From: Podarcis gaigeae
Taxonomy: Eukaryota
DNA length: 64,000 nucleotides
Reading direction: 5' to 3' (one strand)
NCBI GenBank assembly: GCA_964106915.2
Contig: OZ066915.1
Shown: one piece after another, positions 40,482 through 64,000 of the stretch
How positions within the stretch are numbered: position 1 is the first letter of the stretch
Layout of the letters: each line of letters opens with the position of its first letter
Translations under genes and position numbers: made by a program
The notes under the pieces: generated by a model
What the model was told of the DNA's origin: nothing
Seen by the model: only the letters and a program-made list of their open reading frames with translations
Databases searched by the model: none

Positions 40482-43400
40482 ATTTATGATGGATGTGCAA
40501 GACCTACCATTACCATAAACGTATTGGAAATCTCCATGCAAAAACCATGTGCTGTGTTTAAAAAGTAGGTATGTAGGAACAAATCACATCCCATGTATTA
40601 ATTTCACAAATAAAACAATTACGCGAATTCATAAACAATTGCTTTAAAAATTCATCAGCTCTGTATTAAAACAAATTTAGTTTTTTGATTTTAAGATGTT
40701 TTGTTTCATGCTGTAATATGAGTTTGATGAAGGGAGGAAAGAGCTATACAAGGATAAACTCAATACCAATATAAGTAAAATTATTTCAGGCAACTCTCAG
40801 ACAGTATCTCTTAGCTTAACTCTGTGACACGGGAGACTGACTGGTGAATGGCTGTCTTTCAAAATGGGAAGTACATTGCCAATGGACAAGCAGAGGCATG
40901 AACATCTTCCCTACCTATCTTAGGTAAAGCATTCTTTGTGTATGATCCATACTGTTTCCAGGTTTAGTTTCTGGCTATCAGTTGTAAAATACTTTCCTTG
41001 CTTGCAAACCATTTTCTTTCTTGCGACTCGGCTACACAGGTCAATTTATAATGTTAAAAATGCATTATAAAAAGTGACACTAGATGGTGCTGTAGAGCAG
41101 AATCTAAAGTCAATGGCAGATACCTTGGGATTGTTGTCCCCCCACCCATAGCATTTTAAGGGCATATTTTTATATCTGTATAGATCCAGCAGTGCTCTTG
41201 AGGGGGGTGGAATAGGCTCGCAACATCAGAATAACTCTAGCCTATGGAATTGGCTGATGTGATAATGTATGCAAGCTGGTCATTCATTCAGAAGTTAACA
41301 AGACAGGGAGAGTGCTTTAGATAATTGAAATGTTAAAATCATTTGTGGCATCAGATACATAAATAGGCATAGCTGCCGATTTCAACCTGTGCGCTCTGAA
41401 ACTACTCAAACTTATTTGCACAAAGAACGTGTTTCAAACCCCATGACATCCAGGAATATGTGGCTGAATGACACACACATACTAAATGTTTGTGCAAATT
41501 CATATCAGTTTAAAAAAGTTTTTCTCCCTCCGCCATTCCAGGTATTTAACTGCCTGGTCCATGCATACAACTTGCTAAGCTTATAGCAGCCAGACTCTAG
41601 AATTAAAAAATACATAAGCATTTAGTTTCACAACGTGGCATGAATCTGGGTGGAATGAACTGGAGCGTGCCCTGGCTTGTGAAACGTCAGTTCTTCCATA
41701 TGTCTGTACAACTTTTGGTCTTTCACAAGTCATACAGACACCTGACAAATTCTGGCCACATTTTCCTATAAAGGAATGGAGGTTCCAGAGGGAAAGGAAG
41801 GGAGGAAGCGGAAAAAGACTATGTTATGCAAGAAAAGGGCTAAGTTATGCAGAAAAAGTCATGCAAAAGAAGAAAGAAAGGGGGGGATACTATACCAAAG
41901 GGCAGAGCATATCCACACCATCCAGTTCAGGTAAACCTGGCTCCCCTTTAAAAATGAACTGTTAATTGAAAATGGGGAAATATACAGAAAAGTTTATAAG
42001 AAAGCAAAAGGAAAGAAGGAACAGAAAAAAGTAAAGAAATAATTCAGAAGCTTACAGAAATGTTAAGCATGGGGGATCTCTGACCTGGAGGGCAAATGTG
42101 GTCCTCCAGGCCTCCCTTATCCGGCCCTTTGTACTCTCCCCAGGCCACCCCCTCACTGGCCCTGTCCCACACCCTCTTGGGCTGCTTTCCTTGTGTCCTT
42201 CAACTGTAAGAATGCCTCTTACTTGCCTGGAGGTAGGGTAGACAGGTGTGTGTAGAACGTCTGACTTTTGCATGGCCAAAATGCAGCCAAATTAAGAGTC
42301 GCAGCCTAATGTAAGAGTCACATCCAGCGCTCCAACAATTTTCGTCTGTGGGCACACCCACTGGCATGTGACTCCCGCATGCCTGTCCATGATATTCAAG
42401 ATATTTAAGGATGCCCCACCCCTTTTGTGATGTTTTTTGGTCACTTCTGGGTTTGGTACTTTGTATGCGGTTGCCTGCCAACCTAGCAGTTCGAAAGCAC
42501 CCTTGGGTGCAAGTAGATAAATAGGGACCGCTTTCTAGCGGGGAGGTAAACGGCGTTTCCGTGTGCAGCTCTGGCTTGCCAGAGCAGCGATGTCACGCTG
42601 GCCACGTGACCCAGAAGTGTCTTCGGACAGCGCTGGCCCCTGGCCTCTTGAGTGAGATGGGCGCACAACCCCAGAGTCTGGCAAGACTGGCCTGTACGGG
42701 CAGGGGTACCTTTACCTTTTACCTTTTATGCGGTTGCGCATATATCGGACACACCAAAAATGGTCACTGCCTGTATACAGGACTGAAATAAATCAAAAGT
42801 GGCTTGAAGAACGAACTATCTGTTTGTGCCTATTGTGTGCTTGGTTTCTGTTCTGTCTTCCTACTGTTAAGCTCAGCAAGCAGTCACATTGTTTTTTCAT
42901 GGGTTTCTTTCTTTGATTGCTGATTTGCATATGAGGTGCCTTTCCCATTTTGTGTCTACCCTAAAACATGTACGCCAAGAAAGTGACGTTCCAGCACCAT
43001 GATAAAAAGAAAGACCAGTGAAATGGAACCATTGGCCTTCTGCCGTTATCCAAGTTCAAAGTCGTCTGCCTCCAGAAACCTTTTTGTGCTTCAGATGTCA
43101 AAAAGCAATGGAGCTAATTTAAAGCAAACCTATATTCCCAGCAATATCAAACCATACCACTGGACAAGGCTGATCCAATCCAGGCGGCCCTGGCTCTCCC
43201 TTTTGCCCTTTTGCTCCTTTTCTACCTGGAAGTCCTCTTTCTCCCTGTGACACAACAGAAAAATCAAAGCTCTTTTATAATATGAAAGATTGGAGTGAGA
43301 GAAATACCACTTGTTAAGTCCTGAATTTAGCGTCCACCTGTTTGCATTGTGTTATAGACTTATATAAGTGGCTTACATATCATGTGACAGCTCAAATATA

Positions 43401-46400
43401 ATGTACAGAAATTAACAGAGAAGCACCGGAAAGAAAGAATAACCTGCTGTGTGAATGCAGTCCATGAGTGGTCACTTAAGAACAAACATGGCTAGCACTC
43501 ATGGTTCATTTGGTGAGCAGCAACCTACTAAGCTGCCTGGGTTTGGATGTAGTGCTTAGCCAGACTATGGTTTTGCTCTTGGCAGCATGGCAGCGGAATC
43601 AAGAGTAGAAGAGAAGCAAAGTGGGACATCAAGAACAAACCTGGTTACTGCTCATAATGCTTTATACTTTTGCCTTGCATATGCATTCACCTACAAAACC
43701 TGGCATATGACCACATACTATTTCTGCAAATTTGAACTAGCTTCAATTGAACAAGATATAGTTGGGCTCCCCTGTCCTCAAAGATTAAAGGTGAAATATA
43801 TGGCCCTGTTCAGATATGCAGTAAATAGATCTCCAGTATTAAAAGACTCTATAATGACAAATCATCTAGTGATATCTAGTACCATTTATGTAGATGAGGG
43901 CCAACATTTATTTTAGGGGATGTTGTCAGTGAGTATGGACTTTTTGTGTGTGTGAACAGATGAATTAGAGGCAGACATTTAGCTCAGTGAATTAGAAGCA
44001 ATACAGACCTTTTCTCCTCTCTCACTTTTTTCTCCTTTTTCTCCTCTTAGGCCTGGGAAACCCTATAACAGCAACATGGAAAAAAAGTATGTGTTTAGTG
44101 CCAAATAGTTCTGGTAATGAGGAAAAGGAAAAACAAGGATGTTGTTGTTGTTTTTTAAAAGCAACCACTCTGAATTGAGGCAATGAAACATTTTCAGAAA
44201 AAAGTATGTGCATGTTTTGTACTAGTACTGTTTGTTTATTTCTTGCACCCCACTCTTCCTCATACAAAGCCCAGAACAGCTTAACACCATTTATCAAGTT
44301 CAGCATTAAAAACAAAGCTAGGCCGTGATTCACTACAAAGTGCAAAAAAAATATCACTTGGGATATTGCTATTAAAACATTTATCCTGATGAAGCACAAG
44401 GATGTTGCAGATCTTATACTACTACTCATATGTGGCCCAGGGACACCCCTTTCACCTTGGTATAAACCAAGGCTGGATCTACATTGACCTTCTAAACGTT
44501 ATTGAACTGAACATTCTCTAAGGTTCAGTGGCAGTTTCCCTTTGTCAGTGGTTCATTGCTCTGCAGCGCGACAAGTGTAGATCCACCCCAAATCAGGCAA
44601 TAGGTCCACCTCAGCAGTACTAGCATCTGTTATGATCGCAAGGGACTCTTTAGGATTGCTGGTAGAAGTTGTTTCTGACAATGCAACCAGAGACCCTTGG
44701 CCAAGAAAGGCGAATCCTAACCTGAGATGAAAGCATTTGCCCTGCTACACAGTCATGACCCCTCCCTCTACTAATCATTTATAACGCATGAAAAAATCTG
44801 TTTAATTGCTTCCTGCATTGTCTGCTGACATACAGATAGTATAGATAGTATACTCATTACTTACATCTAATCCGGGTTCCCCTGGCTTTCCCTAGGGTTA
44901 AGAGAAAGAAACGGAGACAGTTAACTGGTGAGAGTGGGAAACCACAGGATTCAACTAATGGGTCCCGTCAGAGGAAGTCCTGCGCAAGGACTTATGCTTG
45001 TGAAATGGGGCTTCTCCCCTCCTCACCCTGTACAAACAATTTCAGTGCTGCCCTGAAATTGGCTTGCGGGTGGGGGTGGTTGGGATAACGTCCACAACAG
45101 CACACAGAGGGAGGATATCATTCTGTCTGTTAAGCCAAAATGCTTCCCCTGATGGAACAACTGCCTTAGTGCGATGTTGAATTTCTCTCCATGTTAAGTG
45201 GGTTACATTTATGTTAAGCAGATACCTAGCTCCCTCCCATTGAAATCTGTAAGTATTAAAAGTGCTTTGCTGACTGGGTTCTGGCCCCTGTGTACAGCAT
45301 CTGGACAACACACATATTTTTGTTTTAACACAACTTCTGTAATTTTAGTAACACAAAACAACCAAAGAGGAAATACTATTATTGTGTTGTTGTTTTTCCA
45401 TTTTCCATTTTTTCCATTTCCACAGACGAATCGTTTAAAAAACAAAACAAAACAGAAAACTGCAGAATTTCACCACTGACTCAGATATGATGTCTATAGT
45501 TCGGACAAGCTAATCACATGCACTTTTACACTTTTACAGCAGACGATCAGAATTATCACTGCTGCAACTCTCTGCAACACTGATGGGAAGTCTCTGAGAA
45601 AAAGACCACACAATAATTATGAGGTTTCAAAAAGGTGTCTGAAATCTGTTTTAAATTTCCATGTAGGGCTCAATAACTATTCTTATCAAATTCTCTACCA
45701 TTACAATAATACTTAGAAAACAATTTAAGTTTGCCTGTAAGGAACTTTTATGTAACACAGAAGCTTTCTACTTCATTAAAATTTAGTAGTTTCAAATAAA
45801 ATAAAATACAGTTATGAGTCATTTCGTATCCCTTTGGAGGACTGTGGTGGATGAACGCGTTAACCCATTTCCCATAACAGATCCATATGCGTTCTTACCT
45901 TCTCCCCTTTGGTGCCTGGTAAACCGATAAGCCCAGGAGTACCAGCAGGACCCTAGAGAGAAAAGAAAACTACTATAAAAAGGCTTGGAATATTGCTATC
46001 TGCTTTTTGCTTTCTAATGAAGCACAAGGATGTTGCAGATTTTATACTACTACTCACATGTGGGCCAGGGACACCTTTTTCACCTTTATGACCACTTTCA
46101 CCTTTTGCACCCTTTGCACCATCTGAGCCCTGTATAAAAACAAATACATTTATTAGGGTTTCAACTAGTTGGTTTTTTAAAAAATCACTTGCTTTATGCC
46201 CAATTCATTTTTTTCAATTAAGTTAAAATAAAGTTTCATGTTATCAAAATTTCACTCAAGGTATCTTTTAAAAATACTAAAGGAAATGCAAGTCAACATA
46301 CAAATAAAAGCTCCCTATTATAATAATACACCAGATCAAGAGCACGCAGTACCAGCCTTGGCACCTGTTTAGAGGGGAACAAGAGATTGCAGGGTGGGGA

Positions 46401-49400
46401 CAGATAGTAGAACAATGAAACACTGATCTTGGTAACAGCAGCAGCAGCAGCGGATTTTGTGGGAAAGGGCAAGTGCAAACATGCCCTTTATTGGCTTATA
46501 TAAAGTTATACAAGCATTAAAAAAAAAGATTGCATAAGAAAATTTCAAACCAAAGGTATGAGTTATGAACAGTATCATTCCATTCCTGAATTCTTGCTTA
46601 GTTTCTGAAACTCGCATGATCTGAATCAGAAAGGAATTTGACTGGTGGTAGATTGGGAAGTGACTGAAAGATCTCAACCTATATTGGGTTCTTATAACTA
46701 TCTGCCCGAAATAAATCTTTTGTACTGGTGGGCTCTAAGTTGGGGTTGGCCAAAGACATTTTGCTTCCCGAGCTGAAGAACAAGATGGCATCCCACCTCC
46801 CCATTCCATGTACAGATGCTGACTGGACTTGCAGCTTAATCTTACTTCAGTACTGGCAATGAAATAGGCTAAGGGTGTAGGAAAGGCTGCGTGGCACACC
46901 CACCCACCTCTGTCTTCCAACAGAAGGGTAAGGCCAGGGGCCTTGAGTGAAAATAACATGGGAGGCATCCCAGCATCTGCTGAAAGAGCTGGCTGTCTCA
47001 TTCTGCCTAATTGTAGGGCAGGGCTTGCTCTAGGATAAGCTTAGTCTTCAGTGGTCAAAGTGGTTTGTCCTTGTGCTCAGGTCCATAAATGGTGTGCGCA
47101 ATTTTAGTGACCCACCTTGTGTCCTTGAATTCCTTGGGGACCCTGCAAGATATCAATGATGCATATGAGAAAAGAAAATACAAGGGAGGTGGGGGGGGGG
47201 GGAAAGTTGATCTGTAATTCAAGCCTTATCCTCAAATCCTCAATGTCTGTGCCATCATATTTATCTTTCAGACATTTTATTTAGATGTAGAGAAAAACAG
47301 AAGCCACTCGTGCAAATATGCCTGCATAATTCAGGGGATGTGGCTACAGTCTAGAGTAGACAGGCCTAACTGTTTTTCTTTTTTAGAATGCCGTCATCTT
47401 AGTTTGTTACTGGCCAACCTACAGCCTGAAAAGAATAAGGCACAAAGCTAGAACTTTAAATGCACTCATTCTACACCAGGTTTTGATGAATGGTACACGT
47501 CTTAAAGTTATCATTCTAAAAGTATTCTTTAAGATTAAACCATATAACCCATTGCATTTTTCTTTAGAAATCTACATTATATTTCAGCGTGGAAGGAATA
47601 TGTGAGCATGGAAACTTTCCTTTCAGACAGAAATATCAAGTCCCAAAGCCAAGTGAGAAAAACCAGAGGGCAGCCATGTTTGTTCATCTCTAAAGTGAGG
47701 CTGTGTGTTTAATTTTTATATCAAAATAGATTGGTTGGTAAAGGTAGCTCAATCCTGGCCCTGGCATACCCCACTGCTCTGGGGAAAATGGGGATGAGAG
47801 GCAAAGTGGTCCATTTTGTTTATCTTTTCTGAATCGTGTCATAAAAAAATACATCCTACCACTTCCCTTTCTTTAAATATGAACAGGGAAAACAGGTGAA
47901 GAGCAAAACTGGTTGCTTCTGTCATGTCCCATTTGTCTTATAAAATTTAACAGTAAATATATTAAAAATAGTGTCAATAAATGACAACTCTAAAGGGAGT
48001 TTGAACAGCCAGAACGTGACTGACATTCTGAGGACACAGAATCATGGAAGGTCTAGGAAACAGTGAAGCGAAATGTCTCAGCATTTTCTTGATGTTACCT
48101 GTCATTTATTTATTTGTCAACTTTTAGTTTGCCTACCTGTTGAAGTAGGCCATAATGCAGTATTTTGGCTAATATTCAAAAGGATTAACTGATCAATATA
48201 TTACCCCTTAATTTTTTTAAAAGATTCAAAAGAAAGAAATAAAAAAATGTCCAGTAGCACCTTAAAGACCAGCTAAGTTTGTTCTGGGTATAAGCATGCA
48301 CATGAAAGCTTATACCCAGAACAAACTTAGCCGGTCTCTAAGGTACTACTGGACAATAATTACAAGAGAAAATGGTATCAAGGATCATTAATGTACTAAG
48401 GCAGATGTAAAAGTTATTTGCCTTAACATTAGAAATAACTGAAGAAAGAAAGGGAAGGATAACATTCCCCTCCCCAAGAAACCTGTAGGGATAGGCTCAA
48501 TTGTGTATCCTTTGGCAGCAATATAATTAAATAACATGAATAAATTATATCCAGCAAGAAGTAAAATAGCAGAATTTCAAGCAAGGGCACATATTACTAT
48601 GCCATGATCTCAACAAAGATATTTAATGTAGGTTGGAAAAACCACATGGCATTTAGGTAATAGACTCACCTTATGCCCCTGTATTCCTTGAGGACCCTAA
48701 AGAAAGCAATAGTTCATTTGTTAAAGAATCCTAGTAAATCTTTCATTTTGTACACACAGCTATCAGACTTCTTCTCGAGGTAGAATACATTTGTTTGTAT
48801 CCCCCCCCCATTATCATGGGTTAAAAAACCCACCCCGATCTAAACAAAATAAAAGTTTGATCTAACTTTGTGCTTTCTAACTATAATGAAGTTGTCAGGG
48901 ATTCTAAAATTGTAGAAAGGAGCCTACCCTGACTTCACTGTCCCCTGCCAAATATCCATAAATATACTTCCTAAGGCAATGTGCATCCTTTTCTGGAAAA
49001 TGCCTTACCAATCTGTGATCACCAATATGTGTGTCACTACAAATGTCCACATTCAAACAGTTGTAACAAACAGAAATAGATTTTAAGACTGAAAATGTTT
49101 AACAGTGTACATTGTTCACTTTTTATTCAAGCTGGACCCCCAAATTCCCCTTCCCCAGATATGTGCTGAAATTACCACACAGCAGTTCTTACAGTCCACT
49201 TACGTACCTCGTCAATGCTCTGGTATGGGCTTGCCATCTGCTGGAAGGTTTAGGATCTGATCTAATGGCTAATTATATCAAAGGAAACGTTTGACTATCT
49301 GGATCTCTCCTATATATAGTCAGTGGGATCAACCTTCCTGTCAAACAACTAGAGTCAGCAGTAAAATGCCTGCTGAGCATATTGGGATCCAGGCTTACTG

Positions 49401-52400
49401 AAGCTTAGCTGTTCTGGGCATGCTCTCAGCATAGCATCTATCCTTCATGTGTGCAGTGTGGCGTTTGGGTCTTTAGCACTACATTCCATCACAAACATTT
49501 TACTTCACACAAGGAATCATTTCATAGCTGCATGGAAACCCTTGTTATGGGGTTTTGTTTTTTGGCTCCCAACTCTGCCGGGTGTTATTCCATGCTTATC
49601 CCACAGAAAAAGTAGATAAAATATTAGAGATAAAATTATCTCATTTGCTAAAGTTACTAAGTTGATTTTATTGCAACAACTCAGTGGTTAAGTATTTTAG
49701 GTTTGCACACTCATCATCAACGGTTGTTGATCTGCACACAAAATAAACCTCCCTGGATAGGTTAGAGCCACAGAGATTGTAACCTGGTAAATAATCTGAG
49801 TATTAAAACAGAAGACTTACCGTAGGGCCTGGTGGACCTGGTAGACCTGGAACGCCAGGAGGTCCTGGTTCAGCTATAATCTGCACCTATGGATTTTGTT
49901 ACACAGTGAAGTGATTTGACAGAATACAGACTTGTATGGGCATGATAAAAAAAACAACACATTTAGAATGAAAAATAATTATTGGTGAATGAAAATGCTC
50001 TTAAGAAATATAGAGAACAAAGCAATTAATAAAAACTTTTGTAAAGAACATTAAATAAAAAAGTGTTTTTTTAAAGTCATTTTTTTTAAAAAAACATTCT
50101 TTTAAAAAAGCTAACGTAACACATAATGAGTGTGTTCCAGGTTATTATGGGTGCAGTATGCACATGCAACCAATACCCACAGGCTGAATAGTGCTCTGTT
50201 CTCCCCAATGCCTTGCTGATGGGTGTGTGCAAAGATGGCCTGGCAGGCCATTCAGGAGAAGACTGAAATTTAATCTCTTGGCCATTTCTAAGGCTGCTCT
50301 TCTGACCTCATTTCTGTATCTTAGGCAAACAATTTAAATTCGAATCAGATGTGATAGTTTTTCACCCTGGAAAGCCTACCATATATATTTGATTTATACA
50401 CAGGTATTGAGGTACACAGATAGTTCAGGCAGAAAACAGCAGACATATGTAATACTTGTTGTGTTGAAGAAAATTCCTGGCCTGTAGGAAAATTGTTAGC
50501 ATGTGAAGCAGTCTTTAGGTCATGATATTTATTGATAAGTGATTCTCACTGAAATCAACAGGACATATTTCCAAATGAATGCATTTTGACTTGGGTTCTG
50601 AAAACACTATTAAAAGTAAAGACTGTCACAACACGTATTAATTATGTTGCAAAAATTCAGGAACCTGTAATGTGGAGTCTCAGTGAAACAAAAGTCCTGT
50701 TTCATATTAAAAAGTGACTATTGTCCTGCCAGTGTGGAATACCTGAAGTGGGGTGACCCAGTGGAGGGGCCTTCTCAGTGGTGGCACCCTCCATATGGAA
50801 TTTGTCGCCTTTGGAGGAGTGCTATGTGCCACCAAATATTCAGTTTCATCATTTGCTTAAGGAGCACCTCTTCACACAATGTGCCCCTTCTGATAGTGTT
50901 TGGGCATAGGTCTTTTGGATCTTTTGATTTGCTGTACAGCCCACAGGACTTTAATCTTACTGCTGATTTGTACAATGTAACGGATTTGGGAATTTTAAAA
51001 TATGTTTTCCTATTGGCTCTGTGTTACTTTGTATTTGTATTGTGAACATTTCTTAATGGCGATATAAATATAAATGAAATAGAACAGATAAACGGAACAT
51101 ACGTCTCTCTCAGTATGTTTACAACTTACAAGATCCTTCTCACAGGGAGCGCCAGGTTCTCCTTTTGGTCCATCAATGCCCTAAATAGTAAAAAGAAATA
51201 GTCTGGTGTCTGAGGATGTATTTTAAGACATAAAGTTTGTGGAATAAGAAGATTATGGTGGGGATTCTCTTTATCTAAACTAACATACAAGCCTATTAAT
51301 TTTCGGTGGGAGTTTTTTCTTGCAGGGCTGAACTTTTCTTGGCTCTGATATTGTGTCAGTAACAGGCAAATTATTTATTATTATTATTTCCCCTATGCCT
51401 GGCAATTCCAGCTGAGCTGTGCTAGGAAATAGTAGGCAGCATGACAGCACTGTAAATGGCTATATACAATGTGCTTGTTACTCTTCATGTTTCTTGTAGA
51501 AAGTCCCATCTATATAAACTGCTATCAACCACTTCTTCATAGCGAGATCTCATGCGGATGTCTATGCACCTGCAACCCATGTCTGTGAGGCCAGTCACAT
51601 GGCTCCTTCCCACCCAATCACAACCCTCACTCCCAGGAAGGACTCAAAACAATTCACCTCCCTAATTTTACTGCAGGATTCAGGTTCATAACACTTCAGA
51701 AAAATAGTTCCCATCCTGCTAGCATATGAATAAAGCCTCAAATGATTAAGAGACAGTGTTATCTAAAGAGTCACCTGTACCTGCCTGAGCTTGCCAAAGC
51801 ATTGGCTTTGGAGGCAAGAGCCATTAGACTGTCAGGTAACGGGGAAAAGACTCTCTTCCATGCTTTTGGAACTCCCCACTCCAGGGGGCTAAGTATGGTT
51901 TAATAACTGCTAGTCTTTAAAAAACCTCTGAAGACACAATAATAGAAGTCTGTGTGGGTTTAATTGTGCTGCACTTTTTCACGCAACGCACAGATAAAAC
52001 ATGGTAATTGCTCACACAAGAGGCAGTGATGGCCACTAACTCAAATGGCTTTAAAATATGAGTAGAACAACATATGGAGGAAACAGCTATCAACTGCTAC
52101 TAGCTAGTGTATCTATGCTCTTCCTCCACTGTCAGAGGCAGTGTGAGGTGAAGAGATTCACAAGTGGAATTGAGCTGGACACTCAGAGAACAGGATGCTG
52201 GAGTCTGGACTTAGATAGGCCTTTGGCCTGATCGAGCGAGGCTTATGTTTCTCTTTCTTATGCTTATGCTCTTAAGCCCCTGATATATAATACACACAAG
52301 TGAAAATTAACTTTTTTCTGGTAATTAGCATCTATGACAACCGTCTAGTCCCAAATTATGTTGAAGACAGACATACCGGTGGACCAGACAAGCCCATTTC

Positions 52401-55400
52401 TCCTGTCTCTCCTCTCTCTCCCGCTATTCCAGGGTTTCCTTGGTCTCCTTTCAATCCTTTCGGACCCTACAATGTAAAGGAACAGCATGTTTTCCCCCCT
52501 CATCACCAGATAGATTCAGAGTTATGAACACACACATTCTGCACATGCCCACCCAAAGTAGCCCTCCATATTCAGTAGTCTGCGAACTCTGAAAAGGGGT
52601 TGGCAGACTTGGCAAGGGAAAATCAGGTCAGTATTATACACATATACTGACAGACACTTTTCTGTTTCTATAAGGTTTCTATAAGCTAAAATTAATAATT
52701 TCCTAATACAGCCTGCTAGAAAACATCTGTCAGCCCACAAAACATATATAAATGGTAGGTGCTGAATGGAAGCACCAGAAAGCTCTTTTATTAAAAGAAC
52801 TGATACTCACAGCAGACAAGTGGACAACAGAGTCACTTACAGTTACTTTGAAATGTAATTTGCTCAAGTACCAACCTACATCTATCACCCCAGTCCCCTA
52901 ACAAATACCCTTTTCCATTATGAGTGCAGATGCAGCAATAGAAAGAATGCTGTGGGAACACAGAGGGTGGTACTTTACAAGAGCATAACCAATTAAATGA
53001 ATGGACCTAACTCAGCCATGTTCCATAATTTCAATGGGTCTCCTCTGAGTAAACCTTAGTTGAACACCACCCATAAACACAAATGCAGATTTTTAAACTG
53101 AAGGATAGAATTTGAGGGGAGGGAGTTGTTTTGCCAAAAGAAGTCACAGGAACTTTAAAAAGAAAAGAAACCTCAGGCTGCTTGTTACCTATCAGATTGC
53201 ACATCTTGTCCAGATACTCGCTGAGTTAGTGGGATGTGCAAAAACCTGGGGAGCCAAAATAGAACAGAAAGAGGAGACAGGCTGGACACAAATCCTGCTA
53301 GTGAACAGATGCTGAGAACTGCAGCAGCTGATGCCACCCTGACTGAGGGCAAAGTGGCCATTCCAGGCTCCAGCCAAAAAAGGGCCTACTGATCTCTTTA
53401 AAGTGTGGACCATGACTTTCTCAGGGAGCCTCTGTGAGGAGGCTCTATTTAGGAATCTAACCTTGTTTTCCAAGCAGCTTTATGAATTCCTTCAGGAATC
53501 TCCCCACCCCTCAGGTTATCAGAGACGCTACAGCAGGCACTTACACACCCATTTCCCATAGTGTGTGTGTGTGTGTGTGATGCACTTTGTATACCAAACA
53601 ACTGTATCTGTGAAAACAGTATTTAGTGATAGATATTGAAAACAGACATACTGGGAGACCACTCATGCCAACATCTCCTTTCTCTCCTTTTTGTCCGATG
53701 AGTCCGGAGCTTCCTTGGTCTCCTTTCGAACCTTTAGGACCCTGTAATTTTAAGGGGGGGGGTGGAATGTAAGATAATTGGGTTTTAATTAATAGTAGTC
53801 ATTATTTTCCAGTGTTACTCTGTTAGAATATTTTTTATTTTGATTGTGTTAGAGGAACTGCTGACAATCAAACACTGATTAAGAAGTGGAATGGAATTTA
53901 ATAGATCAGGTGGATGTGACAGGAAACATCAATAAAGATGAGGACATGCACACACTCATCCTGCACACAACAATCTTAAGTATTTATTTTGAATTAGATG
54001 TAAATTAAATTACTGACTGCAATAATTTGATCATGTATCATGGAGGGGTGCTTAATAAAGACTCGGATGGAAAGATGCAACATAGGATAATGGCTCTGCC
54101 TTCCCTCTCTGTGCTCAGGAATGATTGGAGGGTGGAGCAGAGCTTTAGTTCCGGTTGCTTGAACACTTTATTTGGGAAATGACAATCAGGTGTGAACCTC
54201 ATAGAGACCAAATCATATCAAAATTAAAAACATTGCAATTAATATATATATATATTTACAATTATTGTCTCTGTATTCCACACACACACACACACACACA
54301 CACACCATGCCATGCAGATTAAAAATTAGTAGGTTGTCAAGGATATGGAATGGTTGGAAAAACTGCAGGATGAAGAGTTTGCAATTTGCCTATATTTGCC
54401 TCTGAAGACTGCATGCATGCCAACCACTTTAGTAACTCTCAAACATTTAATAGGTAGTTTCAGCCTATTACAGAACTTTAGTCACACAACTGAATGCAAA
54501 TTTATTCATAATGCTCCCGGCCACACCTTCTCTCCATCAACTCCAGGCGGGCCAGGCAATCCAAGTTCCCCCTGGAACAAAAAAAACGGGATAAATCAGA
54601 GCAATGACCGCATCATGAATCTAACCAATAAAAATCTTTTTCCCTTCCCCCAAAGAACTACCGTATATATTCCAGTACTCAAAATTTTAAAGGTGCACGA
54701 TTAATGTTACATATTTCAAGGGAAATGTCAAATTTATTTAAGCCAAGACTTGTGACCTGGTGACTTTTCAACAAACCTTCCAAATAGAGAAAAAACAAAA
54801 AAAATTCCTTCCAGTAGCACCTTAAAGACCAACTAAGTCAGTTCTTGGTATGAGCTTTCGTGTGCATGCACACTTCTTCAGATACCAAATAGAGATTAAA
54901 CTAGGTCAGCCCTAGAGGATCTTCAGCCAGCATGTGGGCTAGCTGATCAATCAATTCATGCCTAATGCCATTGCCAACACTGTTTTATCTGGAACCAATA
55001 AAATTGTGGCTTAATTTGAATCCAACACTTGTCTCTTGCTTCCTTTGCCATCCGCACATCCCACCATGGTCTCACTATGCCTGGGCCCACAAACAAGTGA
55101 TTATACACACTTGTTAAAATTCTTCTCCCTTTGCTAATCTTTGAAACTTTGAACACGTTACCCATCACTCTGACTCCCCCAAAGTTATCCAAGGGGATAT
55201 GCCATGAACAGAAGATTCACATATAAACCAAGCTCAGTGTTGCCAAGCAGGTACTGAGTACAGTACAGAACAAAATACATTTTATGTAAAAGGGAGTAAA
55301 ACCCAACCTTTGGTCCTGGAGCTCCTTGGGGGCCTGGGGGCCCTTGGGGACCTGGCGGGCCCTGGAACAAAAGACAGCAAATTATCTGTTAACTGCTGTT

Positions 55401-58400
55401 AATACAAACATTTTGAATTAACAGAGATGAAAAACAACTGGCAACAAAATCTACGGTTAGCAGGTCATTTAGTTTCCAATTTAAATCCATCTTCCATAAT
55501 GCAGATAATTTCCCCAAGAGGCTAGGAAGGGGATGATCAGAAACAATAGAGAAAGGTGGGAAGTGGCTCCATGACCCCCTGCTGCTTTTTCTGCCTGTCT
55601 CCAAAGGAGTCTTCAGAATTCTCAACCATTAGAGCACAGCTACAGTTTCCCCTGCAGATGACTAGAGCAACACCTAGCTGGGACAGAGGACAACTCCCCT
55701 TGGGAGTTCTGCCATCTTAATGTAATGATGATGGGAATAGTGAGCCAAACGTAAGCACTCTTAAAACCCACTGATTTCAACATGAAATGTGAAGCATGTT
55801 TTCAAAATAATGCCTAATGCAATTTTAAAGAAGCAAGCCAGAAACTATGAAACAAAGCAATTAAACACTTATTACTTGATTATCACTGTGTCTGACATCA
55901 TGCTGCCAATGATTCAACCTAAGGGATTATGTCATTATTTTGTTAACAGAAATCAAATGTTTGGTAGAAAATTTCTGAGAACCATGATAAAAAAATCTAA
56001 AGCAGAAAAGCCACATGCTAGGCCATTAAAAAAACACAAATCCACACAGGCATCTGGCACATAACAATTTTACCGTCAATCTGAGTTTCCCTGCAGCCTG
56101 TTATAAAACAGTTAGAATAGTTTTCAAATGTATTAAGAATTAAATATTTATGCTATTCAAATACTTTTCCAATGGAAAAGACCATCATCTAAACATTTTT
56201 TTATTGTTGAGAACATTATTATATAACCCCCCCCCCCCATTTGATCTGAAAGGACAAACTGAAATTCTACCCCAATCAGTCTCCTTGCAGTCATTATGGA
56301 AGTTACAACCCGCTAAGTAACAAAGAGCTGCTTTTTTCATTTGTGAGTCACTCCCACCAGATGTGCCTGAATTTGCCTACAGCTGTTTCTGGTGGTTTCT
56401 AAAAACAGTTTTGATGGTCACCACACTGAACAGCTTAGCTGCTTTTGACCTATTCAGAAACAACATAGATACCACTATAGGCACAAATTATTGCACTAGC
56501 CTAGCATGTATAAAGGATTCCACATTTGATTCTCACTTCCTTCCAGAGCATCCATCCTTGTCATAACATTTCTCTTTCAAGGTCCATTGCCCTTGATTGT
56601 CCCTTGCTTTTGATGACAGATTTGGTGATGGAGTTGTAGCAAAAAGCTCTGGCAACATGGACAGTTTGCTATGGCTTCTGTGGACCATGCCCAAATTCCT
56701 CAAACTGGCTTGTATGTTGGACTTTTGATTCTTATTTGAGTATCAATCTTGCCATCATGTCCTTTGTAGGCTTTCCAAAGGTGGGAAACAGGACACTGAG
56801 CCAAATCACCCTTTGGTCTGATGTATCAGGGCTCTTCTAATGTTACTAAAATTTAGTGCCACTTCATGTTGAAGCAAATTGTATAATTATTACATTATTA
56901 TCATAAAGGTTACCTTGAGAGCTTCCAAGATTCTACCATCGTAGTCAATTACTACTGTATCACCCTGTTCTCCTTTCAGGCCTGGAGGACCCTACAAAGA
57001 AAAGAAAAGGTAATTGTAAACTTTATGGGAATAGAAATAATTTTCTGCTTTTCACATGCTATTAAGAAGTCACAGTAAATTCTAGTTTCATACTTTAATA
57101 CGGTGCTTTAATTGCTACAGTCTAGATAATAACTCTTCACTGGATGAAAGTGGAATAAACCACCTATGCTGTGACAGTCCCATTAAGGCCCATTGGGTAC
57201 TGGAGGTCCTACTCTTAGAACCATCATTAGTTAAGATAACCTTGGCAGATGCTTTTGCAGTAGTAGCAACACAACTATGGAATACCTCCACCAGGGAAAT
57301 CCTCCAAGCACATTCTCAATGTCATGAGCTATGAAAATATTTTTATTCCTCTATGCTTTGGCACAACAATCCTATGCTTGTCTACTCAGAAGTAAATAAG
57401 AAGTCAGATTCCAAAGCAGCTATAGGGCTGCAGCCAAACAGTGCAATTCTCTATGTATGTCTACTCAGTAGTAAATCCCCTTTGAGTTCAATGATGGAAC
57501 CACCCAGTTAAGTGTGTCTAGGGCTGCAGTCTAAATGTTACTGTCTCTTCACACATCTTGCACCCACCTCCATTTCTGTTGGACCTTTTCTCTTAAGCCC
57601 CCAGCCCCCCCCCGGCTCCAGCCTCGCAGGTGGAGCCAAACACCATAAATAACTGCCCCCTCCTCCTGGATCAGTCTCCTGCCCTCTTCTCTCTGCAATC
57701 AGAGAACTGCCTGACAATGATGTATGACGTAGGTCCTGGTGCAAAATGATTCGAATGCACTTCTATATGGAAGGCAGAGATGTCATAGCACATGGAACCT
57801 CCCTTTGAGGTTTTCAATGGCCTATAAAAGTCAAAACTAGTACCCAACCCATTTTATAAGTCCACACACAAATGTCAAAGACTGAAATTCAAGGAAACTA
57901 TTTTCTACTCCAGAATATTTATACTGATTGTATTATTGCCAACGGGGAAAATCCCTAGCTTTTGCATAGTTAATTTATCTTCCACAAATCTCACAGTGTA
58001 TTCTTTCAGCTTGAGTGTTTATTTTAGGGAGCTAAAGAAAGAACAAAAGTAATTCATACCCTTGGCCCAATGTGTCCATCTGCTCCTCTTTCACCAGGTT
58101 CACCCTGAAAATAAATGTTTGTTACTCTAAAATATTGATTCAGAGACAAGATATGTCACATATCTATGTGTCTTGAGGAGCACAGCATAAGCAATAGCAG
58201 GCTTAAAAGACCTTCACACAATCCAGCTGCAAAACAAATCAGCCAAACCAGATACAAGATAATAAAACTGCCCTGCAGGTTTTAGTGTAACAATATGCAT
58301 ACCACACTGCTGCAAAACCAACTAACTTTTGAACAAGAAATTAGCCTGGCATATAAAATTAATCATGTCATGATTATACTTTTGCTTTCACATATTGTAT

Positions 58401-60175
58401 TTTGTGCTTGCATTGTTTACACTGTCAAATATTTCTTCTTGTAATCTCTGTAGGATATGAAAAATTAACATGGCAAGTAGCAAAAAGACACTCTAGCACG
58501 TCAAATCTTTATAAATTAAAATAGTTGCCACATTTACTGTAGGTATTCTGAAACACAACGTTCTTCAGTTTTCCAGCATAAAAAGAGCTATAACCTAATA
58601 AAGAGGAAGCTAAGTTTGATGCAGACTTCATGAAAATACAGATCAGCTCCAAGGATTAGCAACTTGTTTAAATGGATGTAGCACAAACAAATGTTTCCTT
58701 TTCTCCACTTCAAGACGGAGACTCATGAAAAATTACATAATCAATTCTAAAATGTTTTATCTTGGAATGAACAAGGAGGCAATTAAAAGAACACTCTTTT
58801 CCCTTCTTCCTAACTGATCGAACAGAGAAGCATACCAATGAATGTTGCACTGGTTCAAGCCATACATTTTTGCCCCCTCTCTGCTGGCTTCCTCCACTTC
58901 CTCCTTCAGTGGGGAAAAGCTAATAAGTTCGGCTGGGTGGGTGCTTCAGAAAGCAAGAAAGGTCTCACCATTACGGTCATATGTCAGGGGCATCTAGCTC
59001 AATGCAGCTGGCCAGTTTACTGTTTTATCATTTCATATCATACCTATCTTCTTTCCTGGAAGACTGAAAAAGTAGGAGGCTTAAATGAGACCTGCTGTTC
59101 CTACAGTAATGCAGTTCTGTGTGCATCATGGCAGGTTTTTAAAAATGCAAATTGTAATTGCTGGGTGGGCAGGATAATTACCAGAGGCAATATGGAGAGG
59201 GAATTTAAATCTTGCTGTGGTCCAGGGAAAACAATCCTCTTCTGAATCTGGTATTTGATTTCAAAGGAGCTCAGTTGGTTAGAGCCTGGTGCTGATAACG
59301 CCAAGTTTGCAAGTGCAAACCCCGTATGGGACAGCTGCATATTCCTGCATTGCAAGGGGTTGGACTAGATGATCCTTAGGGTCCCTTCCAACTCTACAAT
59401 TCTAGGATTCTATGAATCAAATAGGGATTATCAAAGGTGATTTTCTCAGCCCCTCAGCAGAGGAAGAAAGGGTTAGATTCTTTCTCCATATTAGCTCTGA
59501 CATTACTAATTATCAACAAGCCCCCGAAGCAATTTGCATTGCAAAAAAAATTGCAGGTTAAATGCAAATACACTTTTAACTCGTCTAGACTAGGCATCCT
59601 TCTTAAATGGAGATTATAATTTATTTATATTTCATCTATAGGTCTTCATTTTGCTTTGAGCCTGACATTCAGAATAGAATAGGGGTCACCACCCCTTTTG
59701 GGTTTGTGGGCACAGTTGCAATCTGAAGAAATTTCATTTCCCCCCCTCCAAGGCTATTTTTGGGGGGTGGGCAGTGGAAGCAAGAGCACCCCAGCTGCAA
59801 TCTCCAGAAAGATCCTCCCCACAAAAATCCCTCTATGTTGGACACTGCATTGGTGACCCATGGAACAGAAAATCTTCAGGTAATAAAGAAACCTGCAGCT
59901 CATATGATACAATGCCCTAGAAGAGGCTGATTACAGATACAGTGTGGTGTAGTGGTTAAGAGCGGTGGATTTGTAATCTGGTGAACCGGGTTCACATCTC
60001 GGCTCCTCCACATGCAGCTGCTGGGTGACCTTGGGCCAGTCACACTTCTCTGAAGTCTCTCAGCCCCAATCACCTCACAGAGTGCTTATTGTGGGGGAGG
60101 AAGGGAAAAGGAGATTGTGAGCTGCTTTGAGACTCCTTAGGGTAGTAATAAAGCGGGATATCAAATCCAAACTCT

Positions 60176-60227
<52 letters not shown>

Positions 60228-63200
60228 TTTTTTTTTTTTTGGAAAAGGACTCACAACTCTTGAAAATATTTCAGTTCTCTATTTTCCTTGGGCTAATGTT
60301 ATGCTGATCATGCGAAACAAAGATACTTATGCTATTTTACATTCCATCCTGATTTCATGATACAGTATTTCCAAACTAACCTATTTGCTTCTTCCTGTTA
60401 CCAGAGCAAAATAAACATGCCATCTATGAAATAATGTCATTTGCTGTAGGGACTTATAAAATTTGTAAACTCTGTTGTCATTTCCTGACCTGGTAATCAA
60501 ATTATTGAATTACTATGCATTAAAGTAATTAGCAGATTCGTGTTTGCGTGTGTGTGTTTTTTTTTTTACTTTGCATGTCTTTATGTTAGAGTGATTCTAC
60601 ATTTTTTACCAAAAAAAATTAATGCAGTATTGTTTTTTATCCTATATTAGCAGAGAAAATGAACGTTCTATCTTAATTTGCCTTAATTTGGAAGTTTTTG
60701 TTATAATTAAATGGTGCCTGTTGTGGAGGACAGAGCTTCGTAAGTGCAGGATCAAACATTCAAAGAGCCAGGGTTTGAGGTCACTAGGTATGGGAAGTTG
60801 GATGTGCAGCACCAGAAGCCCTGCTAGCACACTAGCAATTTCTGATAGCTATGTACCAATACCAGCCAAAGCTCATTCCATCGCCATCCTCCCATGTGGA
60901 AATCCAAGTGCATACAGCTCTTTAAACCACACTAGCTGCCCTGCTTTTCAGCATTCACCATCACATATACAAAAGGGCTCAAGCTGTCTCACCAATTCAA
61001 CATGAAACGGAATTTCATGTGAACCTGGACCTCACTATTTCACAGTAAGCATGCAAATACCCTGCTCTGCACCATTCATGTCTTGTGCGTGTTCCAAAAG
61101 TAAAACATACATCAAGAATCATATGGAGAGGAAGAGCCTTGGGAGGGGAAGGAGTTACATGAGAAAAGAAGCAGTTGGGGAGCAGATTAAGCAGGACCCT
61201 CCCAACACCTCTCTGATCCAAAATGGTCATCTTCCTGAAACAAAAATGACCACCTGTGTTTTGATGCATACATTTGATTACCATGTTTCATTTTGCTCTC
61301 CGTTACCAAGCAGGGTTAATACTAGTCTTGGGCTATGATCCAAGGGAAGTCTTCTACATGTAGAATTTTTCAGCTACAAAAGTTTTCTTCAAATGTCTGA
61401 TAAACTGCTCCTGAATGTTGGAGAGCATGGCAGTGAAACGTCCCATTAGATGTGAGGGGATGCTGCTATAAAGGCAAGTTGCAATTTCATTGTGAATGAA
61501 GCATTATGTATGTTTGTATCCAGACCTCTTACTATCCTTCCCATTTGATACTTACCTTTGGCCCTGGTAGACCATTTATTCCATTCACTCCTATTGGGCC
61601 AACACTTCCTGGTTCTCCCTGTAATGTTTGAAGGAGGTGCAATGGGAAACTCTCAGTTTCTAAGCAGGCCAGGTGCTAGTCTCACTATCCTTTCCAATGT
61701 GATACTTACCTTTGACCCTGGAAGGCCATCTGTGCCTTTCTCTCCCATTGGGCCAACACTTCCTGGGTCTCCCTGTAATGTTTGAGAGAGGTGCAATGGA
61801 AAACTCTCGTTTCTAAGCAGGCCAGGTGCTAGTCTTACTATTCTTTCCCACGCGCCACTTACCTTTGGCCCTGGTAGACCATCTACGCCTTTGTCTCCTG
61901 GGCTTCCGGGTTCTCCCTGAAATGTTTGAAAGAGGTGCAATGGAAAACTTCCAGGGCTGGATCCAGATTCTGCTAGCAGAAGCCTGCACAAGGCATTCTA
62001 CTAGCACAATTTCCTTCCCTCTCCTCCCCCTGTGCCCTGCCATTGGCTGGAGTGGGTGGGAGAACCCCCAGATCAGTGGGGAGAGGGTAGGACAGGATAG
62101 ATTGTTTTGTTAAGCAAGCAGATATGCTTGCATTGATATGAGTGATGCCTAACCTCACTATCCTTTTCCATATGCTGCTTACCTTTGGCCCTGGTAGCCC
62201 ATCAATGCATTTGTCTCCTACTGAGCCATTGCCTCCTGGTTCTCCCTGTAATATTTGAAAGAGGTGCAATGGAAAACACAGTTTCTAATCAGGGCATGCG
62301 CTAATCTTACTATCCTTTCCCATGCGCTGCTTACCTTTGGCCCTGGTAGACCATCTATGCCTTTCTCTCCTATTGGACCAGGGCTTCCTGGTTCACCCTG
62401 CAATGTTTGAAAGAGGTGAAATGGAAAAGTCTCAATTTTTAAGCAGGGCAATAAGACCAGTACAAGCAGCTGGACATCTGGGAGGCTGGGTAAGAAGACT
62501 CACCACCACTGCCCTCCTGAGCACTGCCCTCTGTTTCTGTCAGCCTCTTCTGGAGGACAGATGAGGAAGCCAGATGTGAACCATCTAGTTAAAAGACCAT
62601 TCTTCTGCTGTACTGTATTTATTGTCCATTAACTTTCATTTTGCTCTGTACTTAGGCATTAGGTCTAGATTATATTTTTGTAATATTGAAGACAGTATAT
62701 TCTACGTTTGTTGCTGAATTGTTGTTGTCTTTTCAAAACTGCTTTCTCCCCAATCAATGTTTTGCAGTTTAATAGGAAAAAGGGAATTTGTTGCAAGCTG
62801 CTTTAGGAACAGCTCACTGTGCAAAGGTGCCGTATACATAAACTTAAATGAACTAAACAACCTTACAATCTTTCCCGTGCTCTGCTTACCTTCGGCCCTG
62901 CTAGGCCATCTAAGCCTTTCTCTCCCATTGGGCCAATGCTTCCGGGTTCTCCCTATAATGTTCAAAAGAGATGCAGTGGAAAACTCTCAGTTGGTAAGCA
63001 GGGCATATGCTAATCTTAGCATTCTTCTCCATGCACTGCTTACCTTAGGCCCTGGTAGCCCAACTATGCCTCTCTCTCCCACTGAGCCAGCGCTTCCTCG
63101 TTTTCCCTGTGGTGTTTAAGGAAGGGCAATGGAACTCTCAGTTTCTGAGCAGGTATCATCAAGTCTTAGTATATTTTCGGATGTGCTGCTTACCCTTGCT

Positions 63201-64000
63201 CCTGGTTGCCCTTTTATGCCTTTTTCCCCAGTCTGACCAATGCTTCCCGGATTTCCCTGTAGTGTTTGAAAGAGGTGCAATGGAAGACTTTAAGTTTTCA
63301 AGCAGGGCATGTGCTAAATCTTAGCCGTCATTCCCATGCACTGCTTACCTTTGGCCCTGGTAGCCCATCCATGCCTCTCTCCCCTGTTGGGCCAATGCTT
63401 CCCCGGTTTCCCTGTCAATTTTGAAAGAGGGAGAATGGAAAAACTTGGTTTCTTAGCAGGCTATGTGCTTAGGATCTTGTTATCCTTTCCCATGTAATAC
63501 CCACCTTTGGCCCTGGTAGACCACTCATGCCTCTTTTTCCCACAGGGCCAATGTTTCCTGGTTCTCCCTGTATTATTTGAAAGAGGTGCAATAGGAAACT
63601 CTAAGTTTCTAAGCATGGATTGTGCTAATCTTAGCATTCTTTCCCATGCACTGCTTACCTTTGCCCCTGGTAGACCATCTATGCCTCTCTCCCCTACTGG
63701 GCCAGGACTTCCTGGTTCTCCCTATAGTGTTTTAAAAAAGGTGCAATGGAAAACTCTGTTTCTTAACAAGACATGTGCTAGTCTTTTATCAACTCCCACG
63801 TGCTCCTTACCATTGGCCCTGGTAGACCATCTATGCCTCTCTCCCCTACTGGGCCAGGACTTCCTGGTTCTCCCTGTAGTGTTTAAAAGAGGTGCAATGG
63901 ACAACTCTCAGTTGCTCACCAAGGAAAGTGCTAGCCTTTTTATCCTTTCTCATGCACTGCTTACCTTTGGCCCTGGTAGACCATCTATGCCTCTCTCCCC
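38696..64000 (-). CDS. COL23A1: Collagen type XXIII alpha 1 (transmembrane MACIT collagen), 3' portion; 5' part lies beyond the window
   Basis: All exons are phase 0 with GT-AG. Array exons 63965-64000(partial), 63811-63873, 63659-63721, 63505-63567, 63349-63411, 63194-63256, 63044-63106, 62890-62952, 62335-62397, 62183-62245, 61863-61916, 61710-61772, 61556-61618. Then 58060-58104, 56914-56991 (GEQGDTVVIDYDGRILEALK), 56074-56097 (candidate), 55308-55361, 54527-54571, 53652-53741, 52377-52466, 51130-51180, 49821-49886, 48670-48696, 47116-47142, 46058-46129, 45899-45952, 44865-44891, 44009-44062, 43158-43244 (GLDQPCPV), 40349-40387 (GPDGLPVPGCWHK), and stop TGA 38696-38698 as the first bases of the terminal exon. 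Confidence 0.95.
40440..40480. repeat. (CA)n microsatellite
   Basis: Direct reading. Confidence 0.95.
41896..41946 (-). pseudogene. Probable decayed COL23A1 exon (GEPGLPELDGVDMLCPL)
   Basis: Collagen-like reading frame ending at TTG|GTATAG. The acceptor AG overlaps the first codon, giving a 50-nt frameshifting exon, and one Gly position reads Glu. Confidence 0.55.
42475..42726 (+). mobile_element. 5'-truncated Sauria SINE
   Basis: Core and (ACCTTT)n tail present, with a perfect 11-bp TSD TATGCGGTTGC at 42464-42474 and 42727-42737. Confidence 0.9.
44358..44458 (-). pseudogene. Dead partial duplicate of the COL23A1 72-nt exon and its downstream intron
   Basis: Clear similarity to 45985-46086. 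The donor GTGAGT is changed to ATGAGT (44429) and the 5' half of the exon is missing. Confidence 0.8.
48248..48355. repeat. Inverted repeat (48-bp arms, 3 mismatches, 12-nt loop), Penelope-like fragment
   Basis: Arms at 48248-48295 and 48308-48355. The same sequence family appears unpaired at 54810-54885. Confidence 0.8.
50720..51060 (+). mobile_element. L2-type LINE 3' fragment
   Basis: GGCCTTCTCAGTGGTGGCACCCTCCATATGGAAT (RAFSVVAP.LWN-like) followed by a T-rich 3'UTR. Confidence 0.55.
52005..52272 (+). mobile_element. CR1 LINE 3' end
   Basis: GTGATGGCCACTAACT..ATGGCTTTAAAA...AACAGGATGCTGGA...GGCCTTTGGCCTGATC and (TTATG)n-type tail. Related fragments at ~4380-4600, ~12740-12860 and ~27610-27780. 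Confidence 0.65.
54279..54305. repeat. (CA)n microsatellite
   Basis: Direct reading. Confidence 0.95.
54810..54885. mobile_element. Penelope-like fragment
   Basis: CCAGTAGCACCTTAAAGACCAACTAAG...GAGCTTTCGTGTGCATGCACACTTCTTCAGATAC, homologous to the hairpin at 48248. Confidence 0.65.
59266..59416 (+). mobile_element. tRNA-derived SINE with CR1-type tail (Squam2-like)
   Basis: tRNA-like head AGCTCAGTTGGTTAGAGC..GGTGCTGATAACGCCAAG and tail GGTCCCTTCCAACTCTACAATTCTAGGATTCTATGA. Confidence 0.75.
59941..60240 (+). mobile_element. tRNA-derived SINE (Squam3-like) with (CT)n / poly-T tail
   Basis: A-box TGGTGTAGTGGTTAAG, B-box-like GGTTCACATC, core GCTGGGTGACCTTGGGCCAGTCAC, and a CTCTTCTT tail extended into a (CT)n microsatellite. 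Confidence 0.8.
61525..64000 (-). repeat. COL23A1: Tandem exon+intron array (~150-156-bp unit, at least 13 copies) within COL23A1
   Basis: Unit = 63-nt Gly-X-Y exon plus an 87-93-nt intron with a shared consensus (plus strand CTGTA.TGTTTGAAAGAGGTGCAATGGAAAACTCTCAGTTTCTAAGCAGGGCATGTGCTAATCTTA..ATCCTTTCCCATGCACTGCTTAC). Two introns are lengthened by insertions (266 and 492 nt). Confidence 0.97.

Follow-up and report, generated by a model that had tools for sequence, protein, structure and literature searches.

Tandem amplification of a collagenous exon in COL23A1 of the lizard Podarcis gaigeae, with long and probable short transcripts

Introduction

In the model of collagen-gene origin, Gly-X-Y exons were duplicated in multiples of 9 nucleotides (nt), beginning with a primordial exon of 54 nt. 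Collagen XXIII belongs with collagens XIII and XXV to the MACIT family, for which two spaced C-terminal cysteines serve as a criterion (PMC4678570), and according to a 2021 review (PMC7848082) its physiological role had yet to be characterised. Within the family, rod length varies where collagenous exons are skipped in frame, as seen for the COL1/NC2 exons of collagen XIII and for Caenorhabditis elegans col-99 (PMC4678570), and a zinc-finger exon of Piccolo b has been amplified 8-16 times in one lineage, the teleosts, an event attributed to unequal crossover and called rare there (PMC3484663). Here we describe a stretch of 64,000 nt from Podarcis gaigeae (contig OZ066915.1, assembly GCA_964106915.2; "the window"), in which one exon of the collagen XXIII gene, COL23A1, forms a tandem array of at least 13 units.

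The locus shares with collagen XXIII its exon order, NC2 motif, two-cysteine end, and neighbours, and departs from the usual COL23A1 in that one COL1 exon is present in at least 13 copies instead of one and two further exons are doubled. Collagen XIII and col-99 skip pre-existing, unrelated exons, whereas the skipping considered here concerns a new tandem array that could add at least 240 residues. The amplified unit of Piccolo b encodes globular domains of an intracellular protein, whereas the present unit encodes 21 residues of a continuous triple helix and carries an intron of about 90 nt. As in the primordial-exon model, a phase-0 exon of whole triplets has been copied together with its intron, but the unit measures 63 nt and is recent enough for its introns to be alignable (76% mean identity). 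The process is a known one (tandem amplification of symmetric exons, exon skipping), and this is a real, well-supported case of it in collagen XXIII; our literature search returned no report of exon expansion in collagen XXIII or in lizards, and an entry for the long protein may already exist in public gene annotation.

Organization of the exon array

On the minus strand, positions 61556-64000 carry 13 Gly-X-Y exons, all in phase 0, which we number e1 to e13 in transcription order, E14 being the ordinary exon that follows e13 (Table 1). Twelve are complete (eleven of 63 nt, with e11 at 54 nt), and e1 is cut by the window end; the array starts beyond 64000 and the count is therefore a lower bound. 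The window contains no N letters, and all visible acceptors of the array are AG and all visible donors GT. Each unit, an exon of 63 nt and an intron of about 91 nt, stands head to tail with the next in a single phase, and Tandem Repeats Finder returns the resulting 154-nt period with scores of 1027 and 562, far beyond chance. Ten introns of 87-93 nt are homologous (mean identity 76%; Jukes-Cantor distance 0.29 changes/site), and those of 492 and 266 nt still match the short unit intron at both ends, with an insertion between. Units are 64-86% identical in pairwise comparison overall, and over their last 21-27 nt e1, e9, and e11 show few differences or none. The unit tree is an unresolved star (150 columns, little power), as would fit units that were copied in a burst and then drifted apart.

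The visible array encodes 261 residues, 240 more than one ancestral exon (249 with a complete e1), which at the triple-helix rise of 0.286 nm per residue corresponds to a gain of about 69-71 nm or more. It lies upstream of the first non-collagenous interruption (56914-56991) and therefore in COL1, which is predicted to be the membrane-proximal domain of a type II membrane protein. An earlier reading of the window from its letters alone (the sequence-only reading) had described at least 13 phase-0 units running past the window end, with their peptides and a following ordinary exon at 58060-58104, and had proposed a repeat-finder check: the units, peptides, and exon were all re-found, e1 does break off at 64000, and the check gave the period above. 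Its canonical splice sites and 87-93-nt introns were likewise seen, the two longer introns being exceptions; a recount agrees that Gly occupies 86 of the 87 Gly positions, with a Cys in e10 at the remaining one; and its gain of at least 240 residues, about 70 nm, recomputes to about 69 nm for 240. As an unpaired residue in a homotrimer, the e10 Cys could form interchain disulfides, and the N-G-S of the same exon is an N-glycosylation sequon.

Transcripts: long and short forms

Eighteen RNA-like runs under five organism labels contain part of the stretch, and four (X5, X7, X8, and X13) were mapped on 58001-64000. Most of the 18 runs fit the share of 0.16 expected from exon-only content. In X7, X8, and X13 (organisms B, C, and D; three studies), exact GT-AG joints lead from e3 through e4, e5, e6, e7, and e8 to e9 with matching depths; the e13>E14 joint is present in X8 and X13, and in X13 the contig that carries it accounts for all E14 depth (17.9 x 200/45 = 79.6). 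Because these consecutive joints occur in three organisms, the exons are not used as exclusive alternatives, and the encoded rod is genuinely longer. Co-inclusion of many array exons per transcript had been set beforehand as a test, and the e3-e9 joints of the three runs bear it out.

X5 (organism A) looks different. Its depth over e4-e8 is zero, low-depth unspliced contigs lie over e1-e3 and e11-e13, and a spliced contig of depth 54.4, with 45 letters on its shorter side, joins an e9-like exon directly to E14; this is the only joint into E14 among the joints listed, and it explains nearly all E14 depth. Since the unspliced contigs cover e11-e13, those exons are in that animal's DNA, yet they are skipped. 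The e9-like exon could be either an allele of e9 or a unit outside the window, and e10-e13 are skipped in both cases; a short mRNA with few units is thus probably made as well. The sequence-only reading stands as regards inclusion of the array, for which three organisms provide a long mRNA, with the qualification that inclusion is not constitutive, X5 having a probable short form of nearly ancestral length; transcripts with one array exon or none, which it had named as contrary evidence, are contradicted by the e3-e9 joints, the probable short form being seen in X5.

Two further apparent skips in X7 can be read in more than one way, since e1, e9, and e11 have almost the same ends (alleles may also differ). 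Joints that appeared as e1>e12 and as e10 going back to e9 were considered as skipping or circular RNA and rejected: they are best read as e11>e12 and e10>e11 of a full-length e11 allele, one that is set apart from e9 by just 4 aligned positions. The unspliced X5 contig over e11 has nine letters more than the window, so the triplet deletion in e11 is probably polymorphic. Among metagenome contigs, none matched the splice-junction DNA pattern. Two interspersed elements at 59300-59420 and 59940-60170, both highly repeated and both within the intron that follows e13, reach very high contig depth in all four runs.

Outgroups and age of the array

Outgroup contigs, from non-human vertebrates, were obtained with the NC2 exon as bait, called bird-like or mammal-like from their exons, and compared exon by exon. 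Exactly one 63-nt exon stands at the place of the array, before the same 45-nt exon, in L002, L009, L011, and L013 (three bird-like loci and one mammal-like locus), the single copy that tandem amplification of a symmetric exon predicts for outgroups; the array units share 10-16 of 21 residues with the L002 exon, e9 being the best. One degenerate 64-nt copy that has lost two Gly is found in L007 (4364-4427), a gut-metagenome contig taken for ruminant, and in L008 (3343-3406), and suggests loss of the exon in this mammal lineage.

With single copies in these outgroups, the array is not amniote-wide, the case that the sequence-only reading had named against itself. Its claim of a lineage-specific amplification holds relative to birds and mammals; among squamates the comparison covered one squamate-like contig (L005/L006, of 1.9 kb), which ends 590 nt upstream of E14 and short of the array, and the amplification could be lacertid-wide or squamate-wide. 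Neither the two-exon open frame at 61656-61997, which had no match in a protein search, nor ten window frames, which had no entry in the protein collection, is informative on other squamates, and protein searches with the NC2 exon, made exon by exon, yielded only gene calls on genomic contigs, each unnamed and covering a single exon. The sampled runs are all from close relatives: unspliced pieces of the four mapped runs differ from the window by 0.5-2.6%, against 0.29 changes/site between unit introns, so the amplification is older by a factor of at least ten than the splits between the samples, and the array is expected in other lacertids too.

Selection on the array

Codon rates were compared among the eleven 63-nt exons. 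Nonsynonymous and synonymous rates (dN and dS) are 0.013 and 0.38 for Gly codons and 0.33 and 0.36 for X and Y codons pooled (dN/dS about 0.9). Counted as differences from the column majority, Gly codons vary in 1 of 154 cells at positions 1-2 and in 15 of 77 at position 3 (Fisher p 3e-7; p 0.003 in a conservative minimum-change binomial), and the sole exon indel in the array is one whole triplet. These rates show strong purifying selection at the glycine codons and almost neutral drift at the X/Y positions; such constraint on glycine is what a translated, folded triple helix would predict. Proline makes up 16.9% of the array, with no Gly-Pro-Pro, compared with 20-24% and 6-7 Gly-Pro-Pro in outgroup COL1 (132 residues examined). 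Charges are balanced (29 basic, 29 acidic), and a Lys-Gly-Asp/Glu triad, of the kind that stabilises proline-poor helices, is created at 8 of the 12 exon joints.

Proposed mechanism and alternative explanations

We propose that the 154-nt unit was copied in tandem, probably in a burst of unequal crossing-over, and that the copies later diverged. Each unit consists of seven whole phase-0 Gly-X-Y triplets, so the reading frame and the helix register hold however many units are present. The long form would extend the membrane-proximal COL1 rod by about 70 nm or more, so that COL2, COL3, and the conserved C-terminus would stand farther out from the cell or the shed ectodomain would be longer. Splicing would switch this reach between tissues or stages, the array acting as an adjustable spacer and not as a set of new binding sites. 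An amplified spacer array with long and short mRNAs, in which splicing sets the reach, is the reading we favour and consider fairly probable. A more specific version is offered tentatively: a regulated length switch, with a nearly ancestral short rod in some tissues and one at least 70 nm longer in others, could serve a lizard-specific need such as adhesion of epidermal layers during shedding.

Several points weigh against the favoured reading. The N-terminal half of the gene, with the transmembrane segment and furin site, lies upstream of 64000, beyond the window; the evidence for the short form comes mainly from a single run, X5; sequence from paralogous units or from units outside the window may be assigned wrongly; contig depth does not measure expression; and the runs were called RNA by guess from coded metadata, although exact spliced joints are present. 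Moreover, the near-neutral X/Y sites and the degenerate ruminant-gut copy fit a tolerated, non-adaptive expansion equally well. In this chief rival, which we regard as possible but would not expect, good splice sites make inclusion the default, selection acts only against Gly substitutions and frameshifts that poison the trimer, length is irrelevant, and skipping is noise or a by-product of short introns. The near-neutral X/Y sites cannot separate it from a selected spacer, and it is further favoured by the one tolerated Gly-to-Cys change, by the decay of the L007/L008 exon, which is thus dispensable at times, and by the presence in the gene of a further two doubled exons and a dead partial copy, suggesting a duplication-prone locus. 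Against it, 13 or more units have remained intact while their introns diverged by 0.29 changes/site, no visible unit has decayed or lost a splice site though skipping would permit such loss, and the contrast between X5 and X13 is near all-or-none.

A multivalent ligand platform, in which repeated G-x-x-G-E-R/K hexapeptides offer many weak sites for collagen-binding integrins or other partners, seems improbable: the motif occurs in 8 of the 12 complete units where the outgroup exons have G-E-N, but its second residue is Pro, Ser, or Gln instead of the large hydrophobic residue of GFOGER-type sites, it is varied or lost in 4 units, and the X/Y sites are not conserved. Counting in its favour, collagen XXIII is reported as a ligand of integrin alpha2beta1 in work cited in PMC8220754 and PMC7465455. 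That each mRNA takes only one unit, giving variety without added length, would agree with the single e9-like exon joined to E14 in X5 and with introns as short as about 90 nt, yet six consecutive unit-to-unit joints with matching depths contradict it for X7, X8, and X13, and we give it very little credence. The probability of an assembly artefact, which the sequence-only reading had also raised, is practically negligible; the array is a tandem repeat at a window edge and exons e1-e3 are up to 97% identical, but the units are far more diverged overall, two runs (possibly the assembled sample) contain 94-96% of sampled words, unspliced contigs run across the borders between units, and the e3-e9 order recurs in the joints of three other organisms.

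Gene identity and remainder of the locus

The gene that carries the array is COL23A1, as judged from its neighbours and from an exon-for-exon match to the outgroup loci; exon order, NC2 motif, C-terminal two-Cys region, and gene neighbours all agree with the earlier identification. The downstream exons on the minus strand form the remainder of a MACIT collagen: its Gly-X-Y exons are interrupted at 56914-56991 and at 51130/49880, and it ends in the two-cysteine motif, with exons 43158-43244 and 40349-40387. A class III aminotransferase/phospho-lyase gene, probably PHYKPL (ETNPPL being the sole vertebrate paralog in the search), sits between COL23A1 and an hnRNP gene whose RRM1 exon is identical to hnRNP A/B at 54 of 57 positions, above the scores of hnRNP D and DL for that domain. 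HNRNPAB is a neighbour of COL23A1. AGXT2L2 (PHYKPL) shares a chromosome with COL23A1, whereas AGXT2L1 goes with COL25A1 (PMC4678570), and the AGXT2L2/PHYKPL and HNRNPAB flank found here points to COL23A1 as opposed to COL13A1 or COL25A1.

Table 1. Exons and introns of the COL23A1 locus, in transcription order
Feature	Position	Strand	Transcript evidence
e1 (partial, cut by window end)	63965-64000	-	
e2, 63 nt	63811-63873	-	
e3, 63 nt	63659-63721	-	e3>e4 joint in three runs
e4, 63 nt	63505-63567	-	RNA joints
e5, 63 nt	63349-63411	-	RNA joints
e6, 63 nt, most diverged unit	63194-63256	-	RNA joints
e7, 63 nt	63044-63106	-	RNA joints
e8, 63 nt	62890-62952	-	RNA joints
Intron 8, 492 nt, unit intron with internal insertion	62398-62889	-	
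e9, 63 nt, nearest to ancestral single exon (16/21 residues vs bird-like exon)	62335-62397	-	RNA joints
e10, 63 nt, sole Gly-to-Cys change, N-G-S sequon	62183-62245	-	
Intron 10, 266 nt, unit intron with internal insertion	61917-62182	-	
e11, 54 nt, one Gly-X-Y triplet deleted	61863-61916	-	
e12, 63 nt	61710-61772	-	
e13, 63 nt, last unit	61556-61618	-	e13>E14 joint in two runs
E14, next ordinary COL1 exon, 45 nt, single copy as in outgroups	58060-58104	-	
Exon ending COL1 and starting NC2 interruption	56914-56991	-	
Exon, 54 nt, ortholog in L001	55308-55361	-	
Exon, 45 nt, ortholog in L001	54527-54571	-	
Exon, 90 nt, copy a of second duplication	53652-53741	-	
Exon, 90 nt, copy b of second duplication, closer to outgroups	52377-52466	-	
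Exon, 51 nt, end of COL2	51130-51180	-	
Exon, 60 nt, start of COL3	49821-49880	-	
Exon, 27 nt, copy a of third duplication	48670-48696	-	
Exon, 27 nt, copy b of third duplication, identical peptide, 22/27 nt	47116-47142	-	
Exon, 72 nt	46058-46129	-	
Exon, 54 nt	45899-45952	-	
Exon, 27 nt	44865-44891	-	
Exon, 54 nt	44009-44062	-	
Exon, 87 nt, first conserved C-terminal Cys	43158-43244	-	
Last visible coding exon, second conserved C-terminal Cys	40349-40387	-	

Two further duplications concern exons that are single in the outgroups: the copies of the 90-nt exon are identical at 66 of 90 positions, with Gly positions 1-2 unchanged, and those of the 27-nt exon have five silent differences. At 44386-44458, the 3' half of the 72-nt exon and its donor recur at 92% identity without an acceptor, in what looks like a young, non-functional partial duplicate. 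In L013 and L007 this 72-nt exon has a G-x-S-G-E-R motif (a variant in the bird-like loci), which may be the integrin site of collagen XXIII; the lizard sequence is altered at this place and has no Glu-Arg. Within NC2, 56074-56097 on the minus strand is a candidate 24-nt phase-0 micro-exon flanked by AG and GT; the block of about 120 nt around it is 76-80% identical in L001 (4293-4409), L009 (6216-6321), and L011 (3005-3115) and was not found in the mammal-like loci compared, and by this comparison it is probably a conserved sauropsid cassette exon. A paralogous alternative to the penultimate exon at about 41896-41946 (minus strand), with an open frame and its Cys kept, is shorter than its bird-like counterpart (L001, 11559 onward) and is a possible alternative C-terminal cassette. 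At 48248-48355, two copies of a short interspersed repeat form a 53-nt inverted repeat with a 2-nt spacer.

Significance

The locus is an unusually clear instance of a collagen helix growing by duplication of an exon together with its intron, with the introns still alignable, and it illustrates the constraints on new helix: strong for the glycine register and hardly any for the identity of X and Y residues. As a natural variant with a greatly extended membrane-proximal rod, apparently made in long and short forms, it would allow the importance of reach in MACIT collagens to be tested directly.

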